Positions 8,461 to 46,800 of a stretch of 64,000 nucleotides of DNA are shown piece by piece. A model generated the notes under the pieces. The model was not told the DNA's origin, searched no databases, and saw only the letters and a program-made list of their open reading frames with translations. Source of the DNA: Paragordius varius (Eukaryota; Animalia; Nematomorpha); contig OZ176052.1 of NCBI GenBank assembly GCA_964247055.1, positions 4,216,001 to 4,280,000 of the forward strand, read 5' to 3'. The position numbers and the translations under genes were made by a program. Each line of letters starts with the position of its first letter. Within the stretch, counting starts at the first letter, position 1.

Positions 8461-11400
8461 ATGAATGCACCACTAAAGTAAACCTTTCAATAAATTTTAA
8501 AGGTATACCTGGTTTCAAACCAATCAATTTGTCGTGGTGGATGTATTATGTAAAGTCACAGATATTGATAATTTTAATTGTCAAATAACTCCAGAAAAAG
8601 TTTATTTGAAAATATATTTTTAGCTGCTCATAAGTATCCCAAATTATAGACCGCTTCAATTGCATTTATATGACCTGGTGGATAACACTCATTCTTCCTA
8701 TAAAATATTATCCTCAAAAGTATATTATTAATTTTATTTTGGGTTGAAGTAAAATTAATAAAACAAAATCAATCGCCAGTATTATGGCCTACGCTTGAAA
8801 AGAATACAAATGCTTTACCAACACCCGACATAAGTATTTTTTTATATTAAATATAGCGAATATATATCCTACATCAACGTCCAAAGGGCCTAAAAATTGG
8901 AATTTAATCGAAAAAGAAATCGAAGAGGTTCGCATATTTATATACTTAATCATGTTATGACCAAATTGGTCATGATTATGTAAGATATTTTAATAATTCC
9001 ATATTTACTCATAATGTATTCCAATTTTATGGTTAAAGTTTCAACAAGATGCATCCCTTACCTAACTTTTAAAATATTATTTAGTATAGTCACAACAAAT
9101 AATTATTGACCAATATGATTTTATATAGTTTCTCATTTTAGTATCGAAATATAAACTAGCAGATTTAAATATTTAAAATTATTAAAAGTTACTACTTAGC
9201 TTTCGGGGTAATAAACTGAACAGAATAAAAGAAAATATCGCAAACTTATGTTAACTTTCAAATATAAAAGATTTTCAAATTAAAAAATCTAATTTATCCC
9301 ATTTTATTTTTCTGCATGTTATAAACCATAAAATTAATTATTCCATTAATATATAGCATGGACTTAAAATAAGAAAAAAAACAATATTTTTAAAACTACT
9401 ATTGATTTATATTATAATGTTCGGTTTTAAAATTTCAATAAACAAAACATTATAACTGATTGCTAAAAATTACTTTTTACAGTGTTTAACTGCTCCAAAC
9501 GCAAAATTATTCATTTTTAAAATTGTAAGCTTCTCTATTTTATATATAACATACACTATATTTTAGCCAAATGTCGAAAAAAATATTTATAGTGCTCTCG
9601 TTCAAGCTTCTTAGCCTATTTTTAGCAACAAATGTTACACACTTTCGCGGTTTCGTAAAAATTTTGCCCAAAAAATTTGAGTACCGGTTCAACTTTTTCG
9701 GTGAAATAATATTTGGTTTTGTTTTTTTTTAAAGTTAAGTTAAACTAGATACTACAATGTTATACAATGTTACATATTTATTGCAATTTTTTGATGCTAC
9801 GATATAGATTCATAGATTCTAATGTTAAAAAAACAAATATTTTATTGTAAAGAAAATCATATTTAGAATATTGGTTCTCTTTATTAAAAAAAGTACTGAA
9901 GCTGTTTTTCAGTTAACAATTAAAAAGAACTAGTATCTTGGTTGTCATCATAAATTTAGTTTTGATAAGGTGAATATCTTTTCTACAGTGGACGCCCTTC
10001 CCTCCTTACGATCATTTTTTTGAAAATAAGCAGCGCCTTTAAAAATATTAGCACATCCTGATTATATTCACACAAACTCAAGTTTTGCAATCGTATAATG
10101 TTAAAAACACCTTCCTTCAATTTTTGAACCAAAATTAATAATGAATTTTTTCATCATTCACAATATCTATTTAATATTTTTTAAACTTGCCTGATCAGAT
10201 GTATATGCCTCGCGATGAGCAATTAATTACAACCTCTAAATACATATTATGTGATCCATATTATGATAATGCTACTACACTTATAAAAACAAATATAAAT
10301 AATATTAATAATTCAAAAACAATTAATAAACCAGGTACGAATCAACATTTGAAATAAAAATTAGATTCAAGAATCTAAATAAAAACTTCAAATTTATATC
10401 GTAACCATTCAAAATTGGGTCTTGGAATGTTGAAACAATCGTAAATAAGCAATGAATGGCTATAGATACGGTAAACTTATGCAGCTGTTGACAAGAAACG
10501 ATATAAAAATGTAGGTATGAAAAAGTATGATGGATATTCATTATTCTACCAAGCTGGGATCGTAATGATCAAAGAGACCCACTGACAGAACTTAATTAGC
10601 GTGGCACAACACAGCGATAGGATAATACCAGCTCGAATGGTGTTTAACAAGCGACCCTCAAACGTAAATGCACCCCAAACTTGTCCGATAAAGCAAGCTG
10701 GATTCTTGGGATCGCTCTAACAAATATGTTTTAATATACCCGAAACTGACTCTACGATGATTGGAGGATATCTAAACGCACGTGTTGGAATATACATGGA
10801 GGGGATACAACTTTGATAACCGGAACAAAAAAGGAAAAACAATTAGCCAATACTCTTTTCTTTCACCAACAGCAAAAATAAGCTGATTACATAATAATAA
10901 TAATAATACAACAATAGACTACATCCTAACTACAACATATCCAAAAATATCTGGTAAAATACAACCACTTATCATTCGGAAACACAGCATAAATTTTTAA
11001 CATTAACTTTATTCGATTCAATGCCTTTCAATAATAATAATAATACCTAACCTTGACTATAACACAAGCTTAAAAATCATTAGATAATAAAATATTTCCA
11101 AAATCCGCTTAATTTAACTGTGAAGACTCCTGGCAGTTTTAGCAGCAATGCGATCGAAAGTTTAGAAAACAGCGTGGTAAAAGAAACAGTAAATTCCAAA
11201 AGAAATGGTGGTGGGACGATGCAATTATGCCATTACTTGAAGAAAAGGCGCGTTTGTATAAAAATGGAAGATCGAAAAGAGAATGCTACAAAGTTGAATG
11301 TAACAAATACAACAAAATGGTATTTAAGAAAATAATGATAAGGCTAAAGATACTGCCGATAAATTGGAATAGGAAATCCAAAATTATACAATTTTCAAAC

Positions 11401-13730
11401 ATATGAAACATTACAATAATAACAAAAAAGATATGCCAACGATTAAATGTGTAAAAGATAATTATATTATTTTTTTAAATACAACCAAATCAATTCTTAT
11501 GTAAGTTGGAACAAAATCTAAACAACCCTTTAACATCCATCATAAGTTCTGACAGAGATCTTTGTGGCCTTTTAAGGACTTTTACAATACATGAAATCGA
11601 AATTGCTTTAGACCAAATGTGTTCATACAAGGCTTCGGGCCCTTGTGAACTATGCTTTAATATCATAAAATTAATACCCAATATTTCCATGCTTTTAACA
11701 AAATTATTTAATAAAATAATAGTTGAAATGTAAATACCCACAGACTAGAAAAAAGTATCATATTTCATATCTTCAAAAAGGAGATATTCTCTGCTTCTCA
11801 TACAGGCCCTTAACTTCTAGGGTTTGAAAATTTGAAACATGCTTAAAAAATCTTATCACTTAGCTTATCTCAATCGATCCAATATTCGTCCTCAATAATA
11901 AATACCTAGCAAAAGGTCTTAAATTATAAAAGGCTTACGACTCAGTAACCTACAACTTTAATAATAGCATCACTACGCTACAACAATCTATATACAATTA
12001 TATTTATAATGTTAATCTACATCACTTAATCAGCTGTGTTATTACACCTTTTAGGAATTCGGAGCATTTTAATATTAATACCGGGCTGCATCAGGGGTCT
12101 GTCTTAAACCCTCTTTTTCTCATATTTATATTAGACTCTATTACAAAAGACATTAGAAAAAGATGACCATATGAAATTCTTTACGCAGACGATCTCCATA
12201 ATTCCTGCGGAAACTATTTCAATACTCGAAAATAAATATTTATTGTCATTAAAATTACAAAAAAACGGGCTTAGGATCAATACAAAAAAAACAAAAATTT
12301 AATCACAAGAGATGAGCACCAAACTACAACTCACTTTGTTGTACAAAATGCAAAATTGGGTCCATAAAAAATGCTCCAATATAAAAAATTAATAATAATT
12401 TTATCTGCACACCATGTCCTTTATCAACACCACTGCCAATAGATATCTCATACTCTAGTTTTCAATGGAGATAAAGAAATTGTAGCATTTTTTCCATATC
12501 TTGGCGATTATATAGCATCTGATGGTTCATTGAGGGATGCCAATTCTCATACAATCAGACAAGGATGGGTTAAATTTAATCTTAACCAATAAAAATATTA
12601 AATCGAAATTATTAGACAAAAATTTACAAAATGGGAGTAAGATCAGCTGTTACAGCAACTGACTTAAGTAGACCTACTAGAGCTGAAAATCACATGCTAA
12701 AAATCTGCAAAAATTGTTTTGATAATACCATTAAAGAAGTACCCATATCTCTGTTTATTAAGCGCCGCATGTGCTATTGTGGACATATAGTATTAGCACT
12801 TCTTGTTGGTCCTTGAACATTTTAAGTTGGTCATTTAGCTTTTTTGTATTGTTTTAAACTTTTATCAATTAATGTTATTCATCTATTTTATCATTTTAAC
12901 CTATTATATTTATTGATTTTAAAATTATTTAAAATATTTATAAGATCTTAACACGTAATAAAAAATATATAAGTTTTGTGTCTTCTTATTTCCAATTTTT
13001 CATTAACATTTGTAACTATATAATTTTGTTGAATTAGAAAAAATTGTTTGAAATAAAAAAAGTGGTTTTTAAATAAAATTATTTTTTATTGAATAAACAT
13101 ATGATAAAAAAGAATATTAAGCTAAAAAAAATATAAAATAAAAAATACATGCAAAAGTTATGGTTGAATCAAAATTCTAAAAAATTTGATAACAACAAAC
13201 ATATACTATGTTTTCCATAATTTAGAAATATGGATTTTACACAATTAGATTTTATATTGTCTCAGGAAATTAATTGACTGGTTATTTTGAAAGCGTTAAC
13301 AAATGCATTTATGATCGACCAAACCCAACATACATTTTTTATAGAAATATAACATGTTTTTAGGAAGAAAAGGGTGAAAAACTCGAAGGTGAAGCCGAAG
13401 TTAATCGATTATTTCAACAAATTTATGCGGACGGATCCGACGATGTGAAAAGAGCCATGAATAAATCTTTTGTAATTCTATATTTTCTTACTTAAACTTT
13501 AAAAATTTATGTGTACCATGGTACTTTATAAAATTTAAAAATTTTATAACGCGTTTGTGAACAAAAACCATTTGTAACACTTAATCCAATTCTAATTTTA
13601 TTGTTGTTAACATAAATTTTTTTAGGTCGAATCGGGCTGTACTGTTTTAAGCACGAATTGGGCTGATGTTTCAAAGAAAACAGTTGAACCCAAACCACCG
13701 GATGGGATGGATTATATTAAACCTTTTTGA
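8461..13730 (+). CDS. SUGT1: SGT1 co-chaperone (CS + SGS domains, no TPR), 194 aa. Exons 8461-8477, 8503-8599, 8624-8719, 8743-8833, 8857-8927, 13364-13471, 13626-13730
   Basis: Spliced translation [23 protein letters not shown]...ILSSKVEVKLIK...LWPTLEK (CS domain) ...[83 protein letters not shown] (SGS domain). All phases are consistent; intron 3 requires a GG acceptor. Confidence 0.93.
10390..12830 (+). mobile_element. Decayed RTE-type LINE (APE endonuclease + reverse transcriptase) inside SGT1 intron 5
   Basis: Ordered motifs in shifting frames: KIGSWNVET (~10401), [13 protein letters not shown] (~10770), TIDYIL (~10915), WWDD (~11210), [10 protein letters not shown] (~12085), ILYADDL (~12175), [20 protein letters not shown] (~12495), [10 protein letters not shown] (~12765). 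Many stops and frameshifts. Confidence 0.85.
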
Positions 13731-18127: not shown

Positions 18128-18841
18128 TTATGTTGTTAATTCTTCGGCACCTTGTTTCGCCTGTTTGGCCAAAATTCTTGCCTCACGCTCAATAAGCCGT
18201 CGTTCTCGTTCAAAAGTTTTAAGCCTATCAATTTGGTCTTGATAATTGCAATGCATAAATTCTTCGTACAATGGTTTACAGTGCCGAATAACACGCGGAA
18301 AATTATCTTGCCTACACTTTTGAAATGCCAGCAAAAATCGGGAACAATAATCTATCGTATCTCGGGACGGAAAATGTGCCGCCTCCAAATTCCTACGAGC
18401 AGCAGGTTCTCTTTTACAAGGACGTGGCTGTGGTTTATAGGTTCGATTTGGGTCGGGTTCATGACCACGCCATTCTAACGGGAGAATAGCACGGGGATCC
18501 ATTGAGGAAAGAAACAGATAACCCCGCGTATTTTTTCCTCGATATATACCATATTCATTGTATTGGCTTTCTTCGTCCTCCCATGTCTCAGCATTGTTGA
18601 CTGTATGTGATGATTCATGCAACCCATGATTTTCTGATTCAAATGTCTCGCCTTTAGGTTTTACATGATGATCGTGATTAGAATGATGTTTTTCATGCAG
18701 CTTACGCCGATATTCTTCGTGTGATATCGTTCCGTCAAATCCAAACAAGGGATCAAACATAATTCCATCCTTAACATCAGGGGTCCATTGTGGGAATATA
18801 AAATTACATTTTATCCAATAATATACAGTTCCTAAGACCAT
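18128..18841 (-). CDS. NDUFB7: NADH:ubiquinone oxidoreductase subunit B7 (B18) with a ~100-aa His-rich insertion, 237 aa, single ORF
   Basis: N-terminal FDPLFGF motif; twin CX9C (DYCSRFLLAFQKC...CKPLYEEFMHC); diagnostic C-terminal R.K.FERERRL.ER. Confidence 0.9.
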   Translation of the reverse strand: MVLGTVYYWIKCNFIFPQWTPDVKDGIMFDPLFGFDGTISHEEYRRKLHEKHHSNHDHHVKPKGETFESENHGLHESSHTVNNAETWEDEESQYNEYGIYRGKNTRGYLFLSSMDPRAILPLEWRGHEPDPNRTYKPQPRPCKREPAARRNLEAAHFPSRDTIDYCSRFLLAFQKCRQDNFPRVIRHCKPLYEEFMHCNYQDQIDRLKTFERERRLIEREARILAKQAKQGAEELTT

Positions 18842-19141: not shown

Positions 19142-20678
19142 ATGACTATGGGATCTCACACTGCAAGCACTGAAAAGAAGTCGTTCCAAAGACTTCCGAA
19201 AACGGTTATCCCTACGCATTATGATGTTAAAATAATTCCAAATATAAAAGAAATCAAATTTTCCGGTGAAGAAACTATTGATTTGGAGGTATATTATATT
19301 ACATTGTTTTAGATTAAAGAACCAATTGATAAAATTGTATTAAATTCATTGGAACTCGATATTTCTGATGTTGTTTTCAAGTCTGACAAAAAAGGTATTT
19401 TATATTCGCCATAAAATATTTTATGTTAGATAATATAACGCCTAGCGTTAATTATGACGTGGAAAACGAACAAGCTATCTTCCATTTTAACAATAAAATT
19501 GAGCCTGGTTCAGCGAAGTTACAGCTTAAATTTAAGGGAAAATTGTCTGATAAAATGAGAGGATTTTATTTTACCAAATATTTGCATGACAATAAAGAGA
19601 AAGTCGCCGTCACAACTCATTTTGAGGTTTTTTGTTTTCCCTATTCTTAAATAAATGTAAAATATATTTTGAAATTAATTGGCAATTATTTAACTTATTT
19701 TTTTAGTCCACAGATGCGAGACGAGCTTTTCCATGCTGGGACGAACCCGCCATAAAATCAAAGTTTACCATAACTCTCGTGGCACCGAAAGATTTTGTCG
19801 CTTTGTCAAATATGGTAAAATTTTTACCTTTAAAATTCCTCCCCAAAAAATTACTATAATACGTATAATTATTTAATTCAATCATTTATGTTTTATATAT
19901 TTTTGGGTGAAAATATATTTTTTCACTATTGCGGTTTAGCATATATATTATCGATTTTATACATTTTTAATAAAATATCTTTGTATTCAAAAAATCTACA
20001 CGCACGAAACTTTTATCAGCTGAATGGAAACAAATATTTAGTTGTTTGTTTATCGATATCTGTGAAACTCGTGTTATGACTTTAATTTCTATAATACTTG
20101 GATACATTCATAGTCTTTTCATGCAAATTCGGGTAATTGAATTTTCCAGGCTATTAAATACTTTAAAAAATATGAAATCAATCGAAATATAACTCTAATG
20201 AACTGAACAAAGTATCAAAAAAATTCTAAAAATACTTGTAATTATTTATTTTAAGGTAATACCCAAAAGTAAAGATTTAGTTGATATGACATGCATGCAT
20301 TAGTTATAATAAAAATTAATACAAATAAACCACTATTTCTGTTTCTATCAATGTTAGATTTGATTTAAATAATAATTAGCTTTAATTTTATTTAAAATTA
20401 AATAAACACGATATTTCGCAAAAATGTTGCAAAATAAAAATGGTGCTAAAGTAGTTTAATATAGAATTTTTATTCAAAACTAAATTTATTTAGATATTTC
20501 GGTTTTATATAATTTTTATTATGCATAAATTTAAATTGGGACCGTTTCTTTTATTTTCTTTAAGTAGTTTTTAAAGAAATCAACTCTAATCTCCTGGGGT
20601 ATTTAAAACCCTAATTTGCAAAGTGTTAACGCACAAAATAAATTGTAAAGTGAAAGGGCAAGGTCACTAATAAGCCAT

Positions 20679-20712
<34 letters not shown>

Positions 20713-20964
20713 GCCCGTTGATAAAGAAGTAGATAGTGGAAATAATGAAAAAACGGTTCGTTTCCAAATAACTCCCATTATGTCAACATACATTGTGGCA
20801 TTTGTCGTGGGCGAATTTGAGTATGTCGAAGCCAGAACAGATGATCAGCGGGTCCTTTGTCGCGTTTATACACCCATTGGTAAAAAGGAACAGGGACGAT
20901 TTGCTCTTGAAGTACATAATATATATATAGCGGATTTTTTATAGTTAGCCTCTAGTGTTTAAAT

Positions 20965-21009
<45 letters not shown>

Positions 21010-21995
21010 GATTTTTTAATTTAGTTTGCAACTACTGTTTGAATAGTACAGTGGTACTTACTAAAAAAATTAAAGGACCACAAAAAGTATTTATCTTGAT
21101 TTAAGGGCCGCGCACCACCCATTACCGATAAAAGTTTTATAGATGTTTAACACTCATAAAGGGTAGGGGACTCCGGATTTGGAGTTTTCGTACTTGGTAA
21201 TCTGAAGCGATTTTTTTACGTAACACATGCCCTTGTGTACAACTAATAATTTTACAGATCATTAGAAAATGGCCTTTGCCGTTAGCGTATTTTAATGCCC
21301 CAGCCAACACCGCGGGGAAGTGGCAATATAGGACATTTTTGATTTAACACATTAAATATATATATATATATACACTCAAAATCAATTTAAAAATAAATCA
21401 GGGCCAATTAAAAGCACTTTTAGGACCGCGATCTAAGTAACATTAATAAATTTAATAGTTTAACACATTATTTTCCCTCATTTATAATGATTTTACTGTT
21501 GGTTGGAAAGTATATATAATATGGTTTGTAATCTCGATAATGTGAGGCTTTAGTAAAAAATTGATTTTTTTGTCAATAATTTAATTTATAGGAGCCTACT
21601 GATTATGGGAAAGATGGGCATGGTTTAATATTTCGTGAGAGTAAGTGACCCTTTTAAAAAATTGAACATTAGATTAAATTCAATCATAATATTAGTCATA
21701 TGTATATATATATATATATATGATAGTTTACAGATATTTAATTATTCTTTTTTATTTTTTTTGCTTTTTACCCACCAATTATTGTAATTTGGCGGGGAAT
21801 ATACATGCAATTGTATCATCCCAATTAAAACTCAATTTAGAAATCAAGTGCATGTAATCTGCATAGATTATTCGTTTATTACCCATTAGTTATTATTAAA
21901 AATAACTCTTTATCAGAGATGGTCTACTGGTCATTTTTTATAAATCTTTTTAGTTAATGATATATGCGTAATTTTTTTACCCTTATTTATATGTA

Positions 21996-22027
<32 letters not shown>

Positions 22028-25000
22028 CGCCTTTTGTTTATTTTGGGTTAAGGGCCAATTTTTTCCACACTCAAAATGATGTGGAATAACAAATGGCAAA
22101 ATAAAATTTGGCAGAAAATGTTCAAAACGAGTATATAATACACCTTACAGGCAAAAGGTGATATGAGCGCCTTTTATTATATTAACAAAATTATAATTAT
22201 AAATGATTGTTATCATATTCGAATTTTTATTTGATAATTTATCGGATATATACCGATTTCGTAACAAGTCGTTTTTTTAATTTTTTTGTTTTAAAATATT
22301 TAAGAAAACGAAAAGAATTTAATAAAATCAAATTTACAAAACGGTTACCGGTTAAAGATTAAGCCCATATTTACATTAAAATGTATTTAGCGGTGTGTGA
22401 TAAAAGCGATTATAATTAAATTAAGGATGCTAAAATTATCCTTAAAATTACTCCGGTAATAGATGTTTAAAATATTGAGGCACAATTGTGCAAAATTTCA
22501 TTTCATTGACGGTTATTAAATGGCGAGATTTTTACAGAATGCGAAAATGGTTTGTACAAAATTAAATTTAACCGTGTGCGAAGATTTTGGTTTAGTTTAC
22601 CATTTACAATTCAGATTCGCCCTCGAACAATTCAAATTCACCCTAAAAATTAATTTTGTGTTTTCGGGCTAATATAACTTATCCGTAATATGAAATATAT
22701 TTTTACTACATAGTTTATTATTTTTATAGCATTATGTTAATTTTAAACAGAATTTCATATTTTAAAAATATTATAATTAATAAGGGTAATTTTAAATCTG
22801 AAAAAAAAACACATAATTTTTAGGATGAATCTGAATTCGACGGTGAATTCGAATTGTTCGAAGGCGATGAATTTTTCAAGGGTGAATTTGAACTGTAAAT
22901 GGTATATTTATTTTTCTCACTAAATTTTATATAATAATACGTAATATCTGATATTATTTTTATTTAGGATTTGGGTTTTTTCTAAATATTTTTCTTGATA
23001 GATAAAACAGCATAAAAATTTATTTCCTTAATATATCTTTTTTGACTACAACAGGTTACGACTAAATCACTCGCTTTTTACGAAAAATATTTTGGCATTA
23101 AATACGAACTCCCTAAATGTGATTTAATATCCATCCCTGATTTCGCTTTTGGTGCCATGGAGAATTGGGGACTCATAACGTTCCGTGAAGTTTGCATTTT
23201 ATTGGATGAAAAAACATCGTCAACCAATACCAAAAATTACATTGCAATCGTCGTTGGTATGTATTTACGTATTTGTTTGTTTGTTAAAATGTAAAATTCT
23301 CACTTATCTCAAACAAATTACAAAAACATATTTTTATAATGTTGTAAACATTGATGGTTATTTCGTTTTTTTTTGTTTCATTAATTTTATGCTAGAAAAA
23401 GCTTGTTTTAAACTATATTAGACATCTTGATATAGTTAATTTTTTTGCAAAAATAATAACTTTTGGATGATAATATAGTATTGTATCGTTTTAACTTATA
23501 GGATTTATGCCTTAGATTTTATATTTTTTTTTGTCTAATATCTTATAGCTCATGAATTGGGTCATCAATGGTTTGGAAATTTAGCTACAATGGTATTCGT
23601 TTTCTATGCAATTATTTTATTGACAATTATATTTCCGATATTTATCAACAATTATGATTTACTAATAAAACAATGATGCCTATTATCTAAAAAATATGCT
23701 ATAATTTTACCAGTTTTTTTATTATTTTTATCAATTTTTTAATTAAACACTAAATACGTGATTTTTCACGTTCTAATAAATATTATCTTAATTTCGCTCG
23801 AAAATTAAACGCGAGTGTTTACTATTTAAAATTATTAGAGATACGTTATCTTATTTAAGATATTATTAATTTTCACTATTTTTATGTGTTACTTACGACT
23901 GAAATTATTTTATATTAGGAATGGTGGACATACCTTTGGTTGAATGAAGGTTTTGCTACATGGGTCAGTTTCCACTGTATTAGTCAAATTTATCCGGAAT
24001 ACGATATCTGGACGCAATTTGTTTCTTCGAGTTTTCATGAGGGAATTAGTTTGGATTCTTTGGCCACGAGCCATCCCATTGAGGTAAATATACTTTTTTT
24101 AAATTATTTAACCTTTATTATACCATTTACAGTTCAAATTCACCACCCTTGAACAATTCAAATTCAGCTTAAAAATAAAATATGTGTTTTCGAATTAATA
24201 TAACTCATTGATAATATGAAATATATCTTTATAACATAGTTTATTATTTTATCAGTCTTATTTTAATTTAAAACAAAATTTTTATTTTAAAAAATATATG
24301 AAAATATAGGTAATTTTTAATCATAAAAAACTTATATTTTATATGAGGGTATATTTGAATTGTACATGGTATATATTAATTTAAAATAGTTTTTGGTTTA
24401 ATCTATTATATATATTTTCATATATATTATTATTATGGTAGTTAGGGTGTTTGATTATTATATAATTTTTAGATATATTAAATCCATATTTTTTGTCTTT
24501 AACCTTATGTGGCAAAAAATTTGCAAATAATTCAAATTACCTTAGAAAATGGTGATTAGCATGAATCGACATTAAAAATAAAAATCTTTCTATTAAACAG
24601 ATAGAAAGGTATGACCCGATTTAAAAAATAATTTTTACGATAAAAAAAATAAAACAGTATGCAAAAGTTATTTTGACAAGATTATCAAGTTTTTGTGTAA
24701 AAAATCGGTTTGTCTGTCTAATTTTATTATTTTTAGGTTACAGTAAATCACCCCCATGAAATTGATGAAATTTTTGATGCCATATCTTACGAAAAGGGTG
24801 CATCTTTCCTTCGCATGATGAATGAATACTGTGGACCTGAGGTTAAATTATTTTAATATTTCAAATATTTATACACCAGGGTTTGAAACCACGCCTCGTT
24901 TTAGGTTTTAGTAAAACAGTTTATGTATTTTTTCGATTAAATTGATTCGTTTATACAAAAATAGGTAAAAATACCCCAAAAATCTTATTTAGCCGAAAAT

Positions 25001-28000
25001 TAACCGCGTAACCATTTTTGAAAAAAAAAATTAATTTTTTTAGAACAATCAGACCAGAACGGGGTTTCAAAAAAAATGTGCGAAACTTAACCTATTCAAA
25101 TCCTTGGTTTTTATTATATATATGTTTTATAATCTATTTATAATGACAGGCGTTTCAAAAGGCTCTAAATTTGTACCTTAATAAGTTCAAGTATAAGAAT
25201 GCATCAATCACGGATTTTATGAACGCTTTAGAGGAGGCTAGTGGTAAAAAATTGGGAGCTATGGATACATGGTACAAGAAAGTTGGGTATCCTCTCGTTA
25301 ATGTAAATTATTTTGATTGATTTAATTTAATTTTTTTGGTTTAACTTAAATGTCTGTATATGTTAATTTTTCTACTTGTTTTATTAATAAAGTTCTCCTT
25401 TATCCGCTATTTTCACCTTTCAAAGGAGTTAATACTATAATAATAATAATTATCATGTTTAATATGCGATAAATTTATTTAAACATGAATTATAGGATGA
25501 TATTTTATATCTTATTTTAAAAACTTGATTAAAGGTATAAATTTTTGTGTTGGTTTAAAGACATCAAAAAAATGTAAGTTTACAAAACGTGCGATACAGA
25601 TTGATGTAATTTTGTTTTAAAGATTAATTAACTAATCTGATGTTTTCAAAAATTATTTTTGCAAAATGTGCCATAATTCCAATATTTTTTGGTTAAAGAT
25701 TTTTTTAAATTACAATAAAAATTGAAATTATACGGACAAACCGTAAAAATAAGACAAACATTTTTATCTAAAAGACAACCATACCATACTTTTTAAAACA
25801 TTAATTTTTCCATACAAGCTATTAAGTTATAATTATACAATATAGAATTGATTGTGTTAGTATATATGTCTCTATTTTACACTTAATCATTTATAAACGA
25901 GTTATATTAAAATCAAGATTTTACTAATATGGGTGTCTTTAAAAAAATATTTGTCTTTATATTTTTGCGTTTTGTCCATATAATTTTATTTTTTACTGTA
26001 AATAATTAAATAAAAAAAGTTTAACTAATTTTGCAAAACATATGATATCATATATTGATTTTATTTTAGTTTTAATAGATTTATGGTAACTAGTTATATA
26101 ACAAAAAATTTATTTTTTAGGTTGAAGAAGTTAAAGACGGAAAATCACGTAAACTTAAATTGTCTCAACAAAAGTTTTTGCTTACAGGTCCAGTCAACGG
26201 TATGTACCATATAACTTTATATTTTGAAAAATTATAATGTTGGAATATATAGAAAATATTTATTTAACACTTGGATACAACACATTCATTTTAGTCCTTC
26301 GATTCAAATTGGGGTAGTTAAATACCCCAGGCCTGTTTAAAATTAACTTTAAAAAATATGGAAGGAATCAAAACGATGGCAAAATCTTGCACCTATATAA
26401 CATTAATAATCCGAAATATATAAAAAAATTTATTCAAAAATACTTGATATTACTTATTTTAAGCTAAAACCGAAAGGTAAAAATTTAGTCAACGTGACAT
26501 GCTCGCAATGGTAAAATTGAAAAATAATAAAAAATAAACAGTTTTTTCCATTTCTATCAATCTTAGATGTAATTTAAATAAAAAATTAGCTTCAATTTTA
26601 CCCTTAAAATTAAATGAAGACGATATTTAACAAAAATTTTGTATAATAAAAATGGCGTCGAAGTAGTTTGACATGGAGCTGTTTTTTCAAAACTAAATTT
26701 TATTTAAATTTTTTGGCATATTTATATTATTTTTATTAGGATAGAAGCATAAATTTAAATTAGGACCGTTTCCTTCAGTAGTTTTTAAAAAATCCTAACT
26801 TAAATTTAGTCTGGGGTATTTAGATACCCCAATTTGAATCGAAGTGTTAAACTGTATTTAAAGTTTGTTTAAAAACTAATATAAGTGGTAGTTTTTTTAG
26901 ATTCTTAATGCATGTTTTATATATTATTAAGTTTGATGAATGCATATTAAAAATGTACATGTGGTTAAAATGTTTTTTGAAAATGAATATAATCTTTGAT
27001 AAAAATATATTCAAATAGCTATTATTAACCATATATATTCTTTTTAAATGAATAATCTTTGATAAACGAAATTCCAAATATAAACATTAATAACCATATA
27101 TATATTCTTTTCTGGTATGATATATTTTTAGATGGTACTGTTTGGCAAATCCCCATGACATTTTGCAGTAAAAGTTCACCCAAAAAGCACATTGCTTCAA
27201 CTTTAATCGATAAGCAAAATCAAGAATTTGTAATTAATGATGTTACACCCGAGGATTGGATTAAGGTCCGAATTAAATTCACAATTTTTTAATAAGTTAT
27301 CCATTATTCATTTTGATTTATTCATTAAAGAGTTTTTTCGGAATTTTTCTTGGCTAATTTCAGAATAAAATATATTTGCATGTCCAATAGTTTTATCTTT
27401 TGTTTGTAAATTTATAGGAGAAACTTACTAGTTTATTTATTGCCAGATAGCATATACGATATATAAAGAAATATTGGTTTAAAGTTGGTGAATATTAACA
27501 TAAACTATATTTTTGCTGTTTATAACTAATAAAATTGCTCCTTACTGTAAATGCTATTTGTTTATCAATAATTAATAAAAAACTAATAATGTATGTTAAC
27601 TATAATTTTATGAATGCGCTTTTTACGCACCTACATAGTTGAACTGTGAGACTGTCAGTTTTTGTCGAATTCATTACAGTCCAGAAATGTTGGCTGCTAT
27701 TAAACCGGCCATAGAGAATAATACACTTAAACCGCTGGATCGATATGGGATTGAAAGTGATTCTTTTGCTTTGGTAAGTAGAATTATAAATAATTGTAAA
27801 GAAATACAAAACATATAAACTGTAAGGCAAACTTTTTATACTTTTGTTAAATTTAGGTTTTTTTACAAAAACTAAAATGATCATAAAGTATAGAATTCAT
27901 GTTACCAGTTTACATAAATGTTTATTTTACAACCCGGAACAATAGATTATCTTATAAAAATCTCTAAAAATATTTTAACCTTTAGTATTCAGGTTTTGTC

Positions 28001-31000
28001 TATTTTATTTTTTACTTGTCATTAATAATATATATGAATTATACATTTATATATGATGAATCTATATAGGAATCTCTTTGATGCTTATGATTACAAAATA
28101 ATCTGATATCAAATACTATTTTCCCTATTTTTTAGTGCTGTGTTACCCCTAGTGACCGCTTAAAATAATGTCAGCTTTATATAAATTTAGTACGGACATT
28201 ATAAAACCTTATTCTAATGTAAAATGTGAAAGTATTGAAGCCCTATTATTTTTACATTAATTTATTTCATTAAAACTCTTCTAACAAATATAATTTCTTT
28301 TTTGTTATTTTTTTTATAAGTGGACAAACTAGTTTTTATTATCTTTAACGGTTATTCGACCCAACATAAATTATGGTCCCCATACATTTATTTTCTGTTA
28401 ACATTTTAAGGTGCAAGCAGGTGTTATGCCATTAAAAGAGTTTTTGGACCTGCTTCAAGCTTATCGCAATGAAACAGATTATGCCGTGTGGTGTGACATT
28501 TCTAGCTCCTTAGGTGTTTTGGGTATCATAGCTCAATACATTCCGGATGGTGAAGGTTGGTTGGTTTTATTAATTAGCCTTTATTAATTTTCCAGTAGGT
28601 GACTTTTTTGCTTTTTATGATGCCAAAAAATCTTAAAACTAGATTTTTTATAGTTGTTAAAAAAAGGTTTGAATTTGCCGTTTCCACCATGCTTCGAAAT
28701 ACAATAAAAACATGTTTTAAACACCATTTAGCTAAGTTGTTAAGCAAAGTATACAGTATTTTTTCATATTATTTCCATTATTATTATTTAATTTACAAAA
28801 GTTTAAAGTGATAGGTTTTTTAATGAAATTAGATGTCAAGAAACTTTTAACTGTATATTTTCTATACAGGCGGAAATCATCATGAAGGATCAGATTTACA
28901 AAATTTGGGCAAAGAAACGAAAACTCAACAACTTTTCAAGAAATACGCTATTAATTTGCTGACACCGATTTACGAGAAGCTAGGGTGGGACCCTAAACCT
29001 GGGCAAAGTAATCTTTCTCAAATAAATTTTGGATTTGCCGCAATATATTATCAATATTTTATGTAGTTGAATAAAAATATATGGTTATTAAATGGTATTA
29101 TGCCTACAGTTATGTTTAGAATGTTAAAATGCAAAAATTGTTATGATTTATTTTATGCCTTTAACACCTATCTTCCCTCATGATTGCGTTTAATAAACTA
29201 TTAGTGTTAGGGTAAAGTTTGAGACGATAATATTTCCTATATAAATATATTGCATTAGTATACTATGGGTTCTTTGAGGTTGAAATTTTTTTTTAGGCTT
29301 GATAAGATTTAATTATTTTATAGAAGATAAACTAGATCTTGATTTTTAAAAATGTAGGCAAATCTAAATAATTCTTTCCAATAAACGAACTAAAAAATTT
29401 AATTGGTTTTATATAGTCGTAATTTCTTTATCCTATGTTTATGTTTTAATATTTTTTTCGAATTTGAGCTGAAAATACGACCCGCAAAGGCATTTGAGTT
29501 TGGCACTCTTGATCTAAAAACAATGTATTTATAGAGTCAACAATAATATACCCACATGAGTCAATATATACCATTTACAATATTTCACCCTCTAACAGTT
29601 CAAATCCCTAAAAATAAATCATGTGTTTTCGAACTAATAAAACTTATTATTAAAATGAAATATATTTTTATGGCATAGTTTATTATGTTTTCAGTATTAT
29701 GTTAATTTAAAACAAAATATTATTTTTTTAAATATAGGTAATTTTTTAATATTAAAAAACACATAATCGATTGAGGGTAAATTTGAATTGTAAATGGTAT
29801 ATATAATAAGAAATTCACTTATATTTTCACAAAAAAAATGTGTGATAGATCACGTTGATGCAATGTTACGTGTAATTATTTTAAGCCGTCTGGCCCGTTA
29901 TGATTACCCTCCGGTGGTGGAGGAAGCAAAAAAACGATTTACAGCTCTTTGCAATAATGATAGCAAAACTTGCAATGAAATGTCCGGAGATATGCGTGCC
30001 GCTGTATAATACATAATACATACCTTCTTTTTTTGCTAAAAATTATATAGTAAATTTGGAGAAGTAAACCAACTGAAAAAGTATTAAAGACAATGAATGA
30101 TGATTTTGATTTTCTAAAAAATGAAAGAATGCCTTTTATTTTAATTGCGGGATTATATAGTTTTGATATAAGAATCAAATACCGTATTAACATTCTTGTG
30201 GCCAATTGATAATACCTAGCGTTCATGATATAAAATAGAATCTGTCCATTATTAAATAGACAGATTTAATTTATCCAGGATCGAAAAAAAATTATTAAAT
30301 CTCAATCATTTTTTTTGTTGCGCCGATAGGCCAACATAAATATGCATACTCTGCTATGGTGTTTTTGGATAAAAGAGGCACTTTTTTATTTTTATCACAT
30401 GTATTTATAAAACATTTTTAAATTGCAGATTTACACTGCCATGCTTTCCAATGCTGATGAAAAGATGTACAATCAATTTCTTGAGGTCTGTATTACATGA
30501 TTATATAATTGATTTAGTAATTTGTTTAGATATTTTTCATCTGTTTAATAATCATTTCCTCTTGTTAGATGGCGCGTAAGAGTAATCAACAGGAGGAAAA
30601 GGTTCGAATCTATGCTCGCCTCGGACTTAAGAATGATCCTAAACTCATTCAAAAAACGTTGGATATCGCTAATTCGGTAATCTTGTAATACATTGATAAA
30701 TTTTTAGCTTATTATAAAGAGTATGCTGTTAATTATAATCTTACTTTTAATAGACAAAATTTATTGTCACATAGCTTAGTTAATTTTTTAATGATATTAA
30801 AATTCTTAAATTTACACCAAATTTATGTTCAATGAATTAGCTTTTATTTGACCACAACCAATATAAATATTTCCAATGTTTGAATCATATGTTCTGAATA
30901 ATATAGGATGAAATTCGTTTGCAAGATAAAGTGAGTGTCTTTAGTAGCATTTGTGGTCACAAGCTGGGACGTCAAATGACTTGGGATTACCTTAAGAATA

Positions 31001-31992
31001 ATTGGGAACGCGTTTTGCAATGGTATGGAGGTTTGCACCTTATGTCACGATTGATTAAGGTATAGTTTAGTTTGTAATTTAGTTTAAATATAATTTTTAT
31101 GATTATTATCAAAAATTATTTAATGATATTAACAACACGTTTTTTAGTTTCATTTATCATTTAGTATATAGTATATTTTATTTTTACATTTGACAAAGAT
31201 AACTAGTAAAATTAATTCAATCATTGCTAAATTATTAATCTAATATTAATGTAAATATTTTTCTTTTTGCAGAATGTAACCAGTAATTTTGCTTCGGAAG
31301 ACGCTGCTAAGGATTTGGAGGTATTTTTTATTTTGCAATTCACTAAAAACTGAAAAAAGTGTTATAAGATGTGCCGGTGATGTACTACAAAAGAAATTTT
31401 AAATAATTTTATGGTCATTTTTTGACTAAATCTTATAAATACGGTTATCTATTATCTATCGCAGAGGTGTTCAACACAAATGACTTCACAGGCTATATTT
31501 TGGTTTTAAAAATTTGCCGGCCGCACATAGTTTTGGAGGTCTGCGTGTTTGACTTCTCTGATCTATTATAATTAATATTAGTAAATAGGAACCGCAAATT
31601 ACATGTATTGTATACCAGTTTTAAATTGTTTAGAGTTTTGTTTCCATATTACAGTCATGTATCCTATCTTTTATCAAAAATTTATTTATTTTTTTCGTTA
31701 AATGCTTGTTTTTTTCCATTCTTTAACAAATATTTATACCCATGTAACGAAAAACAAATAAATTTTTGATAAAATAAAGGATACATGACTGTATATAATT
31801 AGAAAGTACATTTTTTTATTTAATCGACTAACTAATTATGTTTTATATAATTAGACCTTTTTTAAAACGCACGAAGCCCCGGCTGCCGAAATGGCTATAC
31901 CTCAATCAATAGAAAACATAAGGATCAATGCAAGTATGCTTAAACGTGATGGCCAAAAATTCAAGGAATATTTGACTCAAAATGTTAAATAA
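19142..31992 (+). CDS. NPEPPS: Puromycin-sensitive aminopeptidase (M1 family), 896 aa, 21 exons: 19142-19288, 19313-19394, 19430-19626, 19707-19814, 20714-20911, 23055-23256, 23549-23592, 23919-24083, 24737-24841, 25150-25302, 26121-26199, 27132-27265, 27639-27773, 28411-28555, 28870-29007, 29849-30003, 30429-30485, 30569-30676, 30907-31059, 31273-31320, 31855-31992
   Basis: [49 protein letters not shown]...WLNEGFA (HEXXH-X18-E), [18 protein letters not shown]. All 20 introns are GT-AG with consistent phases, and the total is 2691 nt. Confidence 0.95.
20095..20625 (-). mobile_element. piggyBac-like MITE (family A, copy 5, degenerate) in aminopeptidase intron 4
   Basis: Starts tacttggatacatt; ends cctggggtatttaaaaccctaatttgcaaagtg followed by TTAA (20626-20629); body is colinear with copies 4 and 6. 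Confidence 0.75.
20681..22025. repeat. Cluster of (TA)n microsatellites in aminopeptidase introns 4-5
   Basis: (AT)14 at 20681-20708, (AT)20 at 20967-21006, and further tracts near 21355, 21705 and 22000. Confidence 0.9.
21049..21445 (-). mobile_element. hAT MITE derived from the 37856-43693 family
   Basis: Begins CAGTGGTACTTACTAAAAAAATT (reverse complement of the right end of the large element). Ends gggccaattaaaagcacttttaggaccgc..taagtaacatta (reverse complement of its left end). TSD not preserved. Confidence 0.6.
22598..22904. mobile_element. MITE family E, copy 1
   Basis: TACCATTTACA(A/G)TTCA...TGAACTGTAAATGGTA inverted ends; reiterated subterminal AATTCAAATTCACCC; shared body with three other copies. 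Confidence 0.8.
24121..24371. mobile_element. MITE family E, copy 2
   Basis: ta|TACCATTTACAGTTCAAATTCACC ... TTTGAATTGTACATGGTA|ta. Confidence 0.8.
25713..25998. mobile_element. Tc1/mariner (pogo-like) MITE family F, copy 1
   Basis: TA|CAATAAAAATTG...TATACGGACAAA ... TTTTGTCCATATA...TTTTTACTG|TA; inverted arms of about 80 bp; TA TSD. Confidence 0.7.
26268..26846 (-). mobile_element. piggyBac-like MITE (family A, copy 6, best preserved) in aminopeptidase intron 11
   Basis: TTAA at 26264-26267 and 26847-26850. Ends are CACTTGGATACAACACATTCATTTTAGTCCTTCGATTCAAATTGGGGTA and TACCCCAATTTGAATCGAAGTG. Confidence 0.9.
29569..29799. mobile_element. MITE family E, copy 3
   Basis: ta|TACCATTTACAA ... 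TTTGAATTGTAAATGGTA|ta; same body as the other copies. Confidence 0.8.
31462..31560. mobile_element. 99-bp hAT-type MITE
   Basis: CAGAGGTGTTCAAC ... GTTTGACTTCTCTG; flanks atctatcg / atctatta (6 of 8 TSD positions match). Confidence 0.6.
31652..31791. mobile_element. 140-bp Tc1/mariner-type MITE
   Basis: TA|CAGTCATGTATCCT...TTTATCAAAAATTTATTT ... AAATAAATTTTTGATAAA...AGGATACATGACTG|TA; inverted arms of about 50 bp. Confidence 0.8.
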
Positions 31993-40672: not shown

Positions 40673-40715
40673 GATTTTGTTTATTTTTTTACACAAAAAC
40701 TTTAAAGAAAATATT

Positions 40716-42570
40716 TTACTCTTTGGTATATTTTTTGTTTGAGTGAATGCGTTTTAGCAGATTGTCATCATTTTTTAAAATATTGTAGAAGTCTTCACAA
40801 GAATTTGTCAAATTATATTTGACAGATAAAACCTTTAAAGTTTCAACATTTAAATTTGATTTTTCCGATGTCCACACCTGATTTACTGTGGAAAAAACGC
40901 GCTCAGTAGCAGCGTTGGTTCCAGGTAAAGATAGTGCGAATTCCACAATTTTTAAAATATTATTGTATGTAATATAGTTGGTTTCAAAATGATGAAATAT
41001 TTCCAACCATTTCTTTTCTACTGTATATTTTCTTTTGTCCATAATTTAAGTTTTTCATTATTAATATATCTTTTAACTAATGATACTTCAGAAAAAAGAT
41101 CATTTTCTGAAAGATTACTTTTTGATAATTTTTGGGAGCAGATATAATCAAATGATTTTTGAACATCGCACCAATTAAATTCTGATTTTAATGTTATCCA
41201 ATGAAAATGATCAATTTCATTGAATTGCGTCGTCCAGTCTTCCAAATAATCTTTACAGTTTGTTTAAAACATTTTTATATGGTACAGGATATCTTGGCGA
41301 TTTATTAAGCCTTGTTTTTCTAAATTTTTTATTATATTGCGGATGGTTAATGGTATAAAATTATTTTCTAACCGTTCTTGACATTGGAATTTTAGGTTAC
41401 TAACTTCTTTGGCTACTTCGATTGCCGAAATTTTGTCACCTTCTATATATTTAATAACATTTTGAAAGAGAGAAGCTTTATGTAAGAATTCTAACCATAT
41501 TTGTGAACAATCATTTTTAAAAAACTTTTTTAAAGTTGTAGGCCATTTGTCCTGTGATAATAAAAAAGATTTTAAAGGGTCATACATTTTTTAAATTCTT
41601 TCGATAGCTGGCATAAAAGCTAACCAACGAGTTTTACAATATCCAAGCATTTTTTGATATTGAACTTCTGCATTTTCACAGAATTCAAGCGTTTCAACAC
41701 TACCGTGTATATAAAAATAGAAATATATTTTAACAACTACATTTTCCACATCTAGGGGTAACAAATCAGCAGCTGTTTGAATAGCGTTGTGTATTATATG
41801 CGCTGCACACCCAACGCCAATAATGTTTTGATTAAGATTATCTGTTAATTTATGAAAAATATTTTTTGTTCCCCTCCTTGCTTTTCCACCAAAGTTCTTA
41901 TTGGTGTTGTCAGCGCAATATGCGATAATTTTGTATTTTAAATTATTTTTTTGCATTATTGAAGTAAATATTATTTCGGAATTTTCACCGGGTAGGGATA
42001 TTAAATCTAAAATTTTAATTTTTACTCCGGTTTCTGAATCAAAATATCTCATCAAAGTGGGAAATAATTTTGTTTCATGGTGATTTGATGCATCAGAGTA
42101 TAGCGATATGGAATTAATTTTCAGCAAATCTTTTTGTATTTCAGAAAATACATGTGGCGAAAGGACATTGCACACAATGGCTTCAGCCTTTGTACGGGCA
42201 CATGTAAATTTTTTATGGAATAACGTGCGAATAACCTGTGAGGTACAGTCCATAGATCTAAAGGAATGATTGTGATTAACGGCGTGAAAAGATAACACGC
42301 CCTCAGCTAGTGCCAAATTCTTTTCTTCCTCTCCAAAAGCGGTTTTTCAAAAAAATCGCTCATTTTGTAAGATGATGCCACCATATCTAAACATTTTTTA
42401 TGTTTCTGTGTTTCCATATGCTTTGTAATATCATGCTTGCCGCCATGTGCTAGGCTGAATTCCCCCTCGCATATAAGACATCTAACAAATGATTCATTCT
42501 TCGTTTTTTTAATAAAAGGAAAATCCTTCATTAATTAATCGTTGAATTTACAACCTCTTTTTGTGCTCAT
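40716..42570 (-). pseudogene. hAT transposase pseudogene (BED finger, DDE core, dimerisation domain)
   Basis: ATG at 42570 with an early in-frame TAA; FVRCLIC..FSLAHGGKHDITKHMETQKH; YSDASNH; YCADNT; GCAAHIIHNA; KTRWL; PGTNAATERVFS. Split into at least five ORFs by frameshifts or stops. Confidence 0.9.
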
Positions 42571-42576
42571 ATTTAT

Positions 42577-43821: not shown

Positions 43822-46800
43822 ATGGGAGGTGGTGAAGAAAAAAAGCATAAGAAACACAAAGATAAAAAGAAAAAAGAGAAGAAGCATCATAAAAAAGAAA
43901 AAAAAGAAAGTTTTGAAGAATTATATTACTATGAGGAAGAAAAAAATATTGATTCAAATACCCCGAATGGTTCATAATTGTTTTATTTTTTAGATGTTAT
44001 GCCCACCCAAGAATTATCCCTTTCTATCCAGGATACGAAGTATTAAATGTTTTCAAAATTTAGTAAACTACGTGAAAAATTGGGGTTGGCACCTTTAAAC
44101 TTGGAATCATCCAATAAAGTTGAAGAAACTCTAGATGGTATTTTTTTATTATATCTTTTGATTTTAATTCCGTTCATTTATAAAACTTTCATTAAAGGCA
44201 ACAAGAAATATACAATTGAAGGGGATACATTTGTACATTTACCCCCTCAAAATTGGGGACAGAAAAAAGCCGATGAAAAGTTACAAGAAAAATTACAAAC
44301 TCGACGCCAAAAACGAGAATTGGAGGAGAAATTAGGGTAATATAATAATATATTTTTATATTAATATATGGCATACCTGCTGTTTCCCCTTAACTTTAAC
44401 ACAGGGGGTGTCGAACACCCTTTTTTCCGTACACAAAAGTACTCTAAAAAAATTTAAAAATAAAAAGTGGATTACGATTATTTAGAAGATTCATTGAAAT
44501 GCTTAAAAAACAGTTAATCAGCCCATGATGAGATCTGTGTTGGACACCCCTGTTTTAACAATACTTTATTTTTATTATATTAAATAACACGCATATATGT
44601 CATACATTACTCCATTTTTAATAATGTTGTAAACAATATCGCTTAGATTAAATAAAACTAAAACACTTGGTCAAGCCGACATCGCAGACGAAAACAATGC
44701 TCTTTCTTGGGTTCAACGAAGTCGCCAATTGGAAAAGGAAAAGGCTTTAGCAGCAAAAAAAGTATGATATATAACTTTTGTCATTTAAATTAATTTAATA
44801 TAATTTTTGAATAAAAAATATGTTTAGTTTCTTTTAAAATTTGTTGAATTTGGATGGAGGTGGTTCATATGAAAATATATTAAAAGTTATAAAAGTACAC
44901 GTCCAACCCATTTTTTTCTTTTTTTCATATCACCTTATTTCGGATTGAATGTGCGGAATTGATAGAGTAGAGATTTAACGATCTTTATTTTATTGTAAAA
45001 TATTTTTTTAAATAAATTCTGTAAATGTTATAAATATTATGTGAAAGTCTGACATTACATGAGAGCTGAGTTAAACCGATTTTATCTCTTTTATAGAAAT
45101 ACTTTCACAGTAATAGTAGACATTATTACATACAAAATATGAATATATAACATAATTTTTGATCCATTGATTTTCATATAATTTAAATGTTAACGATTTT
45201 GAAATTCTATTCTGAATTTCGCAACCAAAGTATAAAAACTATAAATATATTTGTAACTTTACATATACTTTTTAAGTTTTGTCTTTAGTATTTTTGATTG
45301 CTACTGTAATCAACCTCATTAAATATATTTTTAGGCTAAAATGCTTGAAGAGTTGGACCAAGATTTCGGTATAGAAGATTTGATTGAATCAAATATGGGA
45401 ATCGGTAGAGGACGCAAAAGATTGAGAGAGGATGATTTTGATGAAAAAGTTAATTTTTTATTGTTTAAGGTTGTTTATATTAATTATTTTAATCCTGTAA
45501 AATGAAATTTTTTAATTTTTTTGATTACACATAAAGTTAAACTAAAATCCATTTGATTATATTTATTTTATTGTAATTAATATATACATAGTTTTTATCT
45601 TCCTGATAAAAAAATTTTATTAAAATTTTAAGCCAGCAGCTTATAAATCAAATTATTTTTCATTTTTTTACAAAATATTATAATTTTATTTATTTACAAT
45701 TAGGAATATTCAGCCAAACAACTGAAAGGCATTAAAGTAGATCATTCTCTTGAAGCCATACCTGAAGGCGATACTGTTATTTTAACGCTGGCTGATAAAA
45801 GTATTTTTATTGAAATTAACAATAATAATATGTATTTTACATATTTAACGCGATTTTGATCAAAATATTAATCTTACAACAAGGGGTCATATTAGTCCAT
45901 ATCATCAGCTTTTCAAATCGTTATTAATGTTCATAACTTATCAATAAACCGAATTTTTAGTCAACAAATAATTTTGTTAAATGCCATTAGTTAGTTAAAA
46001 ATATATTTTTGACTAAATTTGACACACACATTTTAAACTCAACCATTTTTTTCTTACTCACTCAGATATTTTGGATGAAATGCAAGAAACGGATATAAAT
46101 ATTGATGGTACTGAAAACGTCGTACTTCAAAACCCAAACCTAATTGATGCTGAAAAAGCGGCCAAAAACATTGAAACTCGGTCAAAACGACCAGAATATA
46201 AACCCTATTTAATGGATGAAGCTGAGATGTATGATGATTTTGGGATGGTAAGTAATTTTTTAGTTAATAAAAATTTGTGAAACAATGTATTGTATATTAA
46301 CAATGTTTCCTTTTTCTTTAGTACAAATCAAAGTCCCTGCTTGACAAATATGATGAAGTGATTGGAGATGTGCCTGAAAAAAAGACGTTTGTTCTGGGTA
46401 AAATAAATTATATTTATATATATAGGAGATATAATTATACATTTTTTAATTTTTTATCATAAAATTATTATATTTGAATAACACATGATATTACAAAGAT
46501 TATAGGAATATTTTTAAGGGCACTCAATCAATTTGGCTTTAATTAATTTACTAAACATTTTATTACAAACAGTGGGCAATCAATTTACTGATTAAATTTT
46601 TTTTCAGGGGATTATGGTATCGTGCAGGCATCCCAAATAGAGAAAGACAAGGAAGAACAGATTACCAAAATGAGACAAGAATTAAATATGGTTAATATTT
46701 TTACCGATTAATGGCAAATATCTTTTAAATTGATATTACTGTAAAAATTAAAGTATACGGACAAAACGCATCAATATGAAGACAAATATTTTTTTTCTAA

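Follow-up and report, generated by a model that had tools for sequence, protein, structure and literature searches.

How short can an animal intron become, and does the lower limit depend on where in the gene the intron lies? These questions are raised by a 64,000-nucleotide (nt) stretch of the genome of the horsehair worm Paragordius varius (contig OZ176052.1, positions 4,216,001 to 4,280,000 of the forward strand; hereafter the window, G+C content 24-33%), in which three housekeeping genes, encoding SGT1, an M1 aminopeptidase and SART1 (Snu66), carry introns of 23-35 nt at the very beginning of the coding region, followed by introns of up to 4436 nt. In all, 44 introns were rebuilt, namely six in SGT1, 20 in the aminopeptidase gene, 17 in SART1 and the first intron of a bark-like gene, whose model consists of its first exon and first intron; the SART1 model is approximate between 47378 and 50602. 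Database searches were performed exon by exon, and the spliced models were compared with individual orthologous proteins. Introns of at most 35 nt are counted as micro-introns, and intron positions are genomic distances from the ATG unless the coding sequence (CDS) is stated, the transcription start not being used. A preceding sequence-only reading of this DNA had listed 52 introns, a total that includes introns of bark past the first, which lie outside the present model; every one of its intron coordinates and lengths that could be checked in SGT1, the aminopeptidase gene, SART1 and bark was reproduced, while its position of +467 for the 4436-nt intron of SGT1 takes the second ATG (8461) as origin and becomes +479 from the first (8449).

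The rebuilt introns, whose median length is approximately 300 nt, fall into two classes of 23-35 nt (n=8) and 60-4436 nt (n=36), and none measures between 35 and 60 nt. All eight micro-introns (25, 24, 23 and 23 nt in SGT1, 24 and 35 nt in the aminopeptidase gene, 24 and 24 nt in SART1; seven are thus of 23-25 nt and one of 35 nt) start between +29 and +385, and within every gene that has them they are consecutive from intron 1 onwards; from +438 onwards there are 34 intron starts, and no intron among these is shorter than 74 nt. Under within-gene permutation, micro-introns would occupy the leading ranks of SGT1, the aminopeptidase gene and SART1 together with an exact probability of 1/(15 x 190 x 136) = 2.6e-6. 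No other gene of the window contradicts this rule, since bark is intron-free before +438 and an NDUFB7-like gene is intronless. The genes and introns that carry the observation are as follows.

8449..13730, plus strand: SGT1 gene, with CS and SGS domains and without TPR, seven coding exons
8478..8502, plus strand: SGT1 intron 1, 25 nt, GT..AG, phase 2, CDS +29
8600..8623, plus strand: SGT1 intron 2, 24 nt, GT..AG, phase 0, CDS +126
8720..8742, plus strand: SGT1 intron 3, 23 nt, GT..GG, phase 0, CDS +222
8834..8856, plus strand: SGT1 intron 4, 23 nt, GT..AG, phase 1, CDS +313, genomic +385
8928..13363, plus strand: SGT1 intron 5, 4436 nt, the first long intron, CDS +384, genomic +479
19142..31992, plus strand: M1 aminopeptidase gene, puromycin-sensitive type, 21 exons and 20 introns, all GT..AG
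19289..19312, plus strand: aminopeptidase intron 1, 24 nt, GT..AG, CDS +147, in-frame TAG upon retention
19395..19429, plus strand: aminopeptidase intron 2, 35 nt, GT..AG, CDS +229, genomic +253
19627..19706, plus strand: aminopeptidase intron 3, 80 nt, the first of ordinary size, genomic +485
43822..52285, plus strand: SART1 (Snu66) gene, approximately 18 exons
43970..43993, plus strand: SART1 intron 1, 24 nt, GT..AG, CDS +148
44040..44063, plus strand: SART1 intron 2, 24 nt, GT..AG, CDS +194
44138..44197, plus strand: SART1 intron 3, 60 nt, GT..AG, genomic +316, in frame, stop-free, 17% GC
44337..44646, plus strand: SART1 intron 4, 310 nt, GT..AG, genomic +515/516

The existence of two length classes, with the micro class limited to a 5' block, had been proposed from the sequence, and it holds both in the window and in the SGT1 gene of another hairworm, Gordionus. 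The accompanying claim that the pattern is the opposite of the usual animal arrangement, with its longest intron in first position, is likewise borne out: SGT1 intron 1 measures 25 nt here and 8574 nt in Limulus. The introns otherwise resemble those of usual animal genes in being GT..AG introns at ancestral positions, and differ from them in this reversed polarity. It is likely that the 5' bias holds throughout the genome.

Can segments of 23-25 nt be genuine introns? Removal of the nine short segments, that is, the eight micro-introns and the 60-nt intron of SART1, gives open, homologous proteins. A 5' GT is present in all nine and a 3' AG in eight, the exception being SGT1 intron 3, and once exon boundaries had been corrected, 42 of the 43 introns of the three genes proved to be GT..AG. 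Retention of any of the eight micro-introns, all four 24-nt ones included, leads to an in-frame stop within 2-8 codons; in SGT1 intron 2, as in aminopeptidase intron 1, the stop is a TAG. With regard to a polypyrimidine tract and a branch point, the micro-introns are T-rich in their 3' halves (65% T) and contain A residues in their interior, but only two of the eight have a match to TRAY. A contig from another DNA run that spans 8272-8993 shows three substitutions and a 2-nt gap relative to the window, all of them outside the micro-introns. Reads were inspected over 8200-14199, where runs X4 and X5 are DNA, with even depth over the introns; as for the putative RNA runs over this same interval, X6 gave no contig and X8 a single one, which touches intron repeats only. 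The micro-introns are very probably real spliced introns, and they appear to be ancient introns of the spliceosomal U2 type, their splicing being deduced from the DNA.

The age of these introns can be judged from SGT1, whose loci in Gordionus, Limulus, Lottia and Nematostella were compared by mapping their introns onto one alignment and scoring the sharing of column and phase. The Gordionus locus is that of Gordionus sp. m RMFG-2023, presumably the RefSeq entry for G. montsenyensis. At the column and phase of SGT1 intron 1 lie introns of 41 nt in Gordionus, 8574 nt in Limulus and 886 nt in Nematostella; at those of intron 2, introns of 46 nt in Gordionus, 3989 nt in Limulus, 793 nt in Lottia and 977 nt in Nematostella; and at those of intron 3, introns of 40, 1276, 553 and 437 nt in the same four animals. 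Intron 4 is matched in column and phase by a 124-nt intron in Gordionus, and Limulus and Lottia have phase-1 introns 2 and 11 columns from it, in a variable linker. Intron 5 is common to the two hairworms only, the Gordionus copy measuring 17362 nt, and intron 6 also coincides in column and phase with introns among these four animals. All six intron positions of the window's SGT1 recur in Gordionus, where the introns measure 41, 46, 40, 124, 17362 and 6633 nt and are all GT..AG, and the 5'-short, 3'-long polarity of this gene is conserved across the deep hairworm split. The size of the small introns is lineage-specific, being approximately 40-46 nt in Gordionus versus 23-25 nt in Paragordius varius. 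It is of note that the homologous intron 4 measures 23 nt at +385 in the window and an ordinary 124 nt at +425 in Gordionus, a switch that fits, as a single case, a boundary set by distance near 400 nt.

SGT1 intron 3, with its GT..GG ends, requires separate consideration. Its position is that of an intron from cnidarians onward, and only the excision of exactly 23 nt joins ...YKILSSK to VEVKLIK... free of gaps, where orthologues read FKVLTTK before the junction and VEIKMKK after it. The independent DNA contig lists no difference at the GT..GG site. Two other solutions were tried and rejected: use of the next AG, 7 nt downstream, as the end of the intron makes the exon open with an in-frame TAA, and 31 conserved residues of the CS domain would be lost with 8634-8749, the sole in-frame GT..AG pair that inspection by eye revealed. 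As a separate observation, isoform X2 of Gordionus SGT1 in RefSeq (177 amino acids, aa) is 16 residues shorter than X1, the missing residues including some of the CS domain that exon 3 encodes; the pair 8634-8749 could yield a skipped SGT1 form comparable to it.

The gene models into which the micro-introns fit are supported along their length. For SGT1, the remaining features are the following.

8449-8477, 8503-8599, 8624-8719, 8743-8833, 8857-8927, 13364-13471 and 13626-13727, then the stop, plus strand: SGT1 exons
13472..13625, plus strand: SGT1 intron 6, 154 nt, GT..AG, with Pfam SGS positions 49/50 continuous across it

The spliced SGT1 model is a protein of 198 aa, residues 3-194 of which align with Gordionus SGT1 at 51.6% identity; the orthologues that come after Gordionus reach at most 46%, and residues 8-196 align with SGT1 of vertebrates, insects and molluscs. 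Gordionus was the only close relative that the searches brought up, and at this identity it is a distant one within the nematomorphs. There are no gaps at any of the six junctions in the orthologue alignments, and Pfam places the CS domain in exon 2, SGS positions 16-49 in exon 6 and SGS positions 50-79 in exon 7. Intron 5 is full of high-copy repeats, the depth of a DNA run over 10200-13200 being 10- to 200-fold above baseline. On the other side of the gene, an extremely high-copy repeat occupies 8200-8309 (contig depth of approximately 670,000 against a baseline of approximately 300 in run X4) and stops approximately 140 nt short of the SGT1 ATG, which indicates that transposons are tolerated beside the SGT1 promoter on its upstream side.

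The aminopeptidase open reading frame (ORF) is complete, with 896 aa, a single terminal stop, the GAMEN motif and one further motif. Introns 1-10 of the gene measure 24, 35, 80, 899, 2143, 292, 326, 653, 308 and 818 nt, and introns 11-20 measure 932, 373, 637, 314, 841, 425, 83, 230, 213 and 534 nt. Positions 2-26, 66-123 and 124-159 of the Pfam family Peptidase_M1_N are found in exons 1, 3 and 4: exon 1 ends at position 26, the gap of 39 positions between exons 1 and 3 corresponds approximately to exon 2 (27 aa) together with 8 aa at the beginning of exon 3, and positions 123/124 are continuous across intron 3. One further intron of this gene may be listed here.

19815..20713, plus strand: aminopeptidase intron 4, 899 nt, with repeats present elsewhere in the window making up 45% of it

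Exon 5 of the aminopeptidase gene is adjoined on both sides by (TA)n microsatellites (20680-20712 and 20960-21000), the upstream one of which enters the 3' splice site. A tblastn search with the aminopeptidase exons against the Gordionus loci of SGT1 (L001) and of the NDUFB7-like gene (L005) detected no synteny.

In SART1, the introns measure 24, 24, 60 and 310 nt, followed by approximately 13 more, all of at least 74 nt, and positions 21-52, 75-106, 105-151, 417-452 and 533-584 of the Pfam family SART-1 are found in colinear exons. Removal of intron 1 is needed to link the K/H-rich N-terminal ORF with exon 2, and its retention brings a stop after two codons. The HIND profile has 25 positions, and exon 3 enters it at position 11, so that intron 2 splits the HIND motif. 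A search with a 97-aa SART1 ORF found no homologue. The shortest intron beyond the 5' zone belongs to this gene.

46248..46321, plus strand: SART1 intron 8, 74 nt, CDS +915

What could keep such small introns at the 5' end, and only there? The reading that is modestly favoured, at somewhat below an even chance, is that of a position-dependent limit on length, with intron definition at the 5' end and exon definition downstream. Ancient introns would have shrunk in this hairworm lineage to what appears to be the smallest splicable size (23-25 nt, in one case 35 nt), the shrinkage being limited to a block of adjacent introns in approximately the first 0.4 kb after the ATG; downstream introns of the same transcripts never fall below 60-74 nt, and many amount to kilobases of transposon debris. 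The lower limit on intron length would thus depend on position. The 5' introns would be recognised by intron definition while the polymerase is in an early, cap- and promoter-proximal phase, and could shrink as far as the spliceosome permits, one of them even lacking a 3' AG, while downstream introns would be paired by exon definition, with a floor of roughly 70 nt and free absorption of transposons. That the cause lies in splicing competence, rather than being purely evolutionary, is suggested tentatively. The sequence-only reading had put forward both a dependence on the cap or promoter and a 5' zone protected from insertion of transposable elements (TEs). Some 20 downstream introns of 74-330 nt contain no repeat detectable within the window, and none of them is micro-sized, which favours a positional length limit over simple loading with TEs. 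The in-window repeat check on which this comparison relies is weak, the 4436-nt intron of SGT1 having been scored as repeat-free although DNA depth reveals its high-copy repeats.

Several points weigh against this explanation. Micro-introns occur in three genes only, and their splicing is presumed from DNA and homology. The boundary near 400 nt is not sharp, being blurred by the 60-nt intron of SART1 at +316 and the 23-nt intron of SGT1 at +385. Distances start at the ATG and not at the transcription start site (TSS); the 5' untranslated regions (UTRs) must be short, since a repeat lies approximately 140 nt before the SGT1 ATG and a divergent gene 300 nt before that of the aminopeptidase. Short downstream introns may hide old TE remnants, given the weakness of the repeat check, and splice-site profiles are alike in micro-introns and other introns, in what is a small sample. 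Finally, the mechanism itself, whether it involves the cap-binding complex, the state of the polymerase or the mode of splice-site pairing, is a proposal only.

A purely evolutionary explanation, which is rather unlikely, would dispense with any such limit: deletions would trim all introns, and TEs would re-inflate all except those in a promoter-proximal zone guarded by selection, 5' insertions being selected out as they disturb the promoter or attract silencing. The long introns are indeed transposon-laden, as illustrated by SGT1 intron 5, with its depth of 10- to 200-fold, and by introns of at least 440 nt, which often carry repeats present elsewhere in the window; moreover, the orthologous downstream introns of Gordionus SGT1 have reached 6.6 and 17.4 kb, against 40-46 nt, the small size proper to that species, at the 5' end, and the failure of the repeat check to find the repeats of SGT1 intron 5 leaves room for undetected TEs. 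Such trimming does not readily account for the approximately 20 downstream introns of 74-330 nt that show no in-window repeat, none of which lies below 74 nt: if lengths were log-uniform down to 23 nt, the chance of finding zero of approximately 43 below 74 nt would be, as a rough estimate, 2e-5. The high-copy repeat close to the SGT1 ATG also speaks against a guarded zone, TEs being tolerated near at least one promoter.

Returning to the position-dependent limit, a more specific proposal, distinctly unlikely as it stands, is that hairworm splicing gauges how far an intron lies from the promoter or cap. In approximately the first 400 nt, introns of a fixed minimal size would be excised (23-25 nt here and 40-46 nt in Gordionus); the 3' cut would be set largely by length and not by an AG, as the GT..GG ends in SGT1 might illustrate; and an ancestral intron would switch class according to the side of the boundary on which it lies, as in the case of SGT1 intron 4.

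Position could also be incidental, if micro-introns were spliced only beside other micro-introns or short exons and if cooperative blocks of them had survived at the 5' end for historical reasons. All micro-introns of the window do adjoin one another, short introns cluster in flatworms (PMC6530080) and myxozoan short introns have shorter neighbours (PMC13644364). This clustering rule is nevertheless improbable, for intron 1 opens the block in every one of the three genes, as it does in Gordionus SGT1, and no internal or 3' block exists among the 34 introns at +438 or beyond.

It is highly improbable that the segments are artefacts, 'introns' that patch the frameshifts of pseudogenes or assembly errors. 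One of the nine short introns does lack the AG, and splicing was deduced from DNA; however, the splice-site dinucleotides described above, the exact coincidence of three SGT1 micro-introns with the column and phase of distant animals, the identity of the independent DNA contig within the SGT1 micro-introns and the complete, conserved, full-length ORFs are difficult to reconcile with such a view. As for non-spliceosomal removal through somatic DNA elimination or translational bypass, no such process is known to us in hairworms, and although the tight length class and the one non-AG end loosely recall the eliminated sequences of ciliates, the ancient spliceosomal positions with GT starts and the presence of the segments in both DNA samples make it extremely improbable.

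Are there precedents for such an arrangement? Ciliates have introns of a similar size class, of approximately 25 nt in Paramecium and 15-16 nt in Stentor, and nearly all of their introns are tiny; to our knowledge, no position dependence has been reported for them. Every micro-intron described here gives a premature stop if retained, a property that was reportedly described for Paramecium by Jaillon and colleagues in 2008. Within animals, the Schistosoma mansoni genome paper of 2009 is reported to have noted smaller 5' introns. Flatworms have spliced-leader trans-splicing.

The closest parallel comes from flatworms, as the microintrons of Opisthorchis felineus, Clonorchis, Schistosoma, Echinococcus and Macrostomum are shorter than 75 bp, with a peak at 37 bp, and make up 34% of introns (Ershov et al. 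2019, PMC6530080). They cluster and lie near the TSS, and Ershov et al. suggest that intron definition is preferred (PMC6530080). As in the window, a very short class exists beside kilobase introns in the same genes, and microintrons adjoin one another and sit preferentially at the 5' end; no special sequence motif marks them (PMC6530080). Unlike the flatworm microintrons, with their peak at approximately 37 bp, those of the hairworm measure 23-25 nt, and the flatworm pattern is genome-wide, statistical and RNA-backed, whereas the present one concerns three genes read from DNA. The resemblance between Platyhelminthes and Nematomorpha is presumably convergent. The 5'-clustered layout of short introns is thus already known from flatworms and is not unprecedented.

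In terms of size, a survey of 51 animal genomes (Hadjez et al. 2026, PMC13644364) restricts introns shorter than 30 bp to Dicyema and the myxobolids among the myxozoans, a work in which Nematomorpha and related names are unmentioned. Like those of myxobolids and Dicyema japonicum, the hairworm micro-introns are animal introns of less than 30 bp at conserved positions (PMC13644364), and short introns in myxozoans have shorter neighbouring introns (PMC13644364). Myxobolids and Dicyema have compact genomes with a median intron of 22-27 bp (PMC13644364); here, unlike in those animals, eight of 44 introns are micro-introns, the others reach 4.4 kb, the genome is repeat-rich, and the median of approximately 300 nt lies far above 30 bp. 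A search of the literature returned no statement on hairworm intron sizes, and the word 'intron' is absent from both the Gordionus genome preprint and a 2024 nematomorph comparative preprint. The occurrence of the layout in hairworms, at 23-25 nt beside kilobase introns, therefore appears to be undescribed.

Should RNA confirm the splicing, horsehair worms would become the third animal lineage with introns below 30 nt, and the only such lineage in which these coexist with introns of 4-17 kb in one transcript. One spliceosome would then handle 23-nt and kilobase introns a few hundred bases apart, with a choice tied to position. This would offer a natural system in which to approach the minimum length of an intron, the split between intron and exon definition along a gene and an independent likeness to flatworms. 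A practical consequence may also follow, as gene finders that bar introns of less than 30-40 nt would mis-model hairworm 5' exons, which could inflate apparent gene loss and lower completeness scores; the BUSCO completeness of Gordionus montsenyensis is 71.6% (Gordionus genome preprint).

The remaining genes and elements of the window are of lesser concern to these questions. The two neighbouring genes mentioned above are situated as follows.

58440..59771, plus strand: start of the bark-like gene, with SRCR and beta-helix domains downstream
18131..18841, minus strand: NDUFB7-like gene, intronless, head to head with the aminopeptidase gene, 300 nt between the two ATGs

The first coding exon of bark is uninterrupted for 438 nt (58440-58877) and is followed by an 894-nt intron (58878-59771) at +438. 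The 300 nt between the divergent ATGs imply that the 5' UTR of the aminopeptidase gene is shorter than 300 nt. The NDUFB7-like ORF of 237 aa has a single database match, from Gordionus, with 49% identity over 98% of its length, and the Gordionus gene (L005:10001-10675) is likewise intronless. The protein has a histidine-rich N-terminal extension of approximately 150 aa, which is conserved in Gordionus. In Gordionus, a gene model that extends over all 20.7 kb of locus L005 encloses the NDUFB7-like gene; the product of this enclosing gene is a protein of 175 aa with weak zf-CCCH and RRM matches; a scan of L005 for the exons of this host gene (zf-CCCH/RRM) was unproductive. A search of the window with Rfam returned no RNA family.

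On the minus strand, 13919-16041 contains two long ORFs of 335 and 290 aa with no Pfam match, the upstream one having a start that resembles a signal peptide; the two can be joined by an intron of approximately 310 nt starting near CDS +790, and the pair may represent a lineage-specific secreted protein. The motif AWCAGCTGWT occurs three times in the window (12642, 55343 and 55505), against an expectation of 0.11, with no occurrence in modelled exons. Finally, the remains of a hAT/ZBED-type transposase are present at 40719-42534 on the minus strand, as five consecutive open pieces split by stops and frameshifts, and a second, similar hAT/ZBED-type fragment lies upstream on the opposite, plus strand, at 38336-39530.

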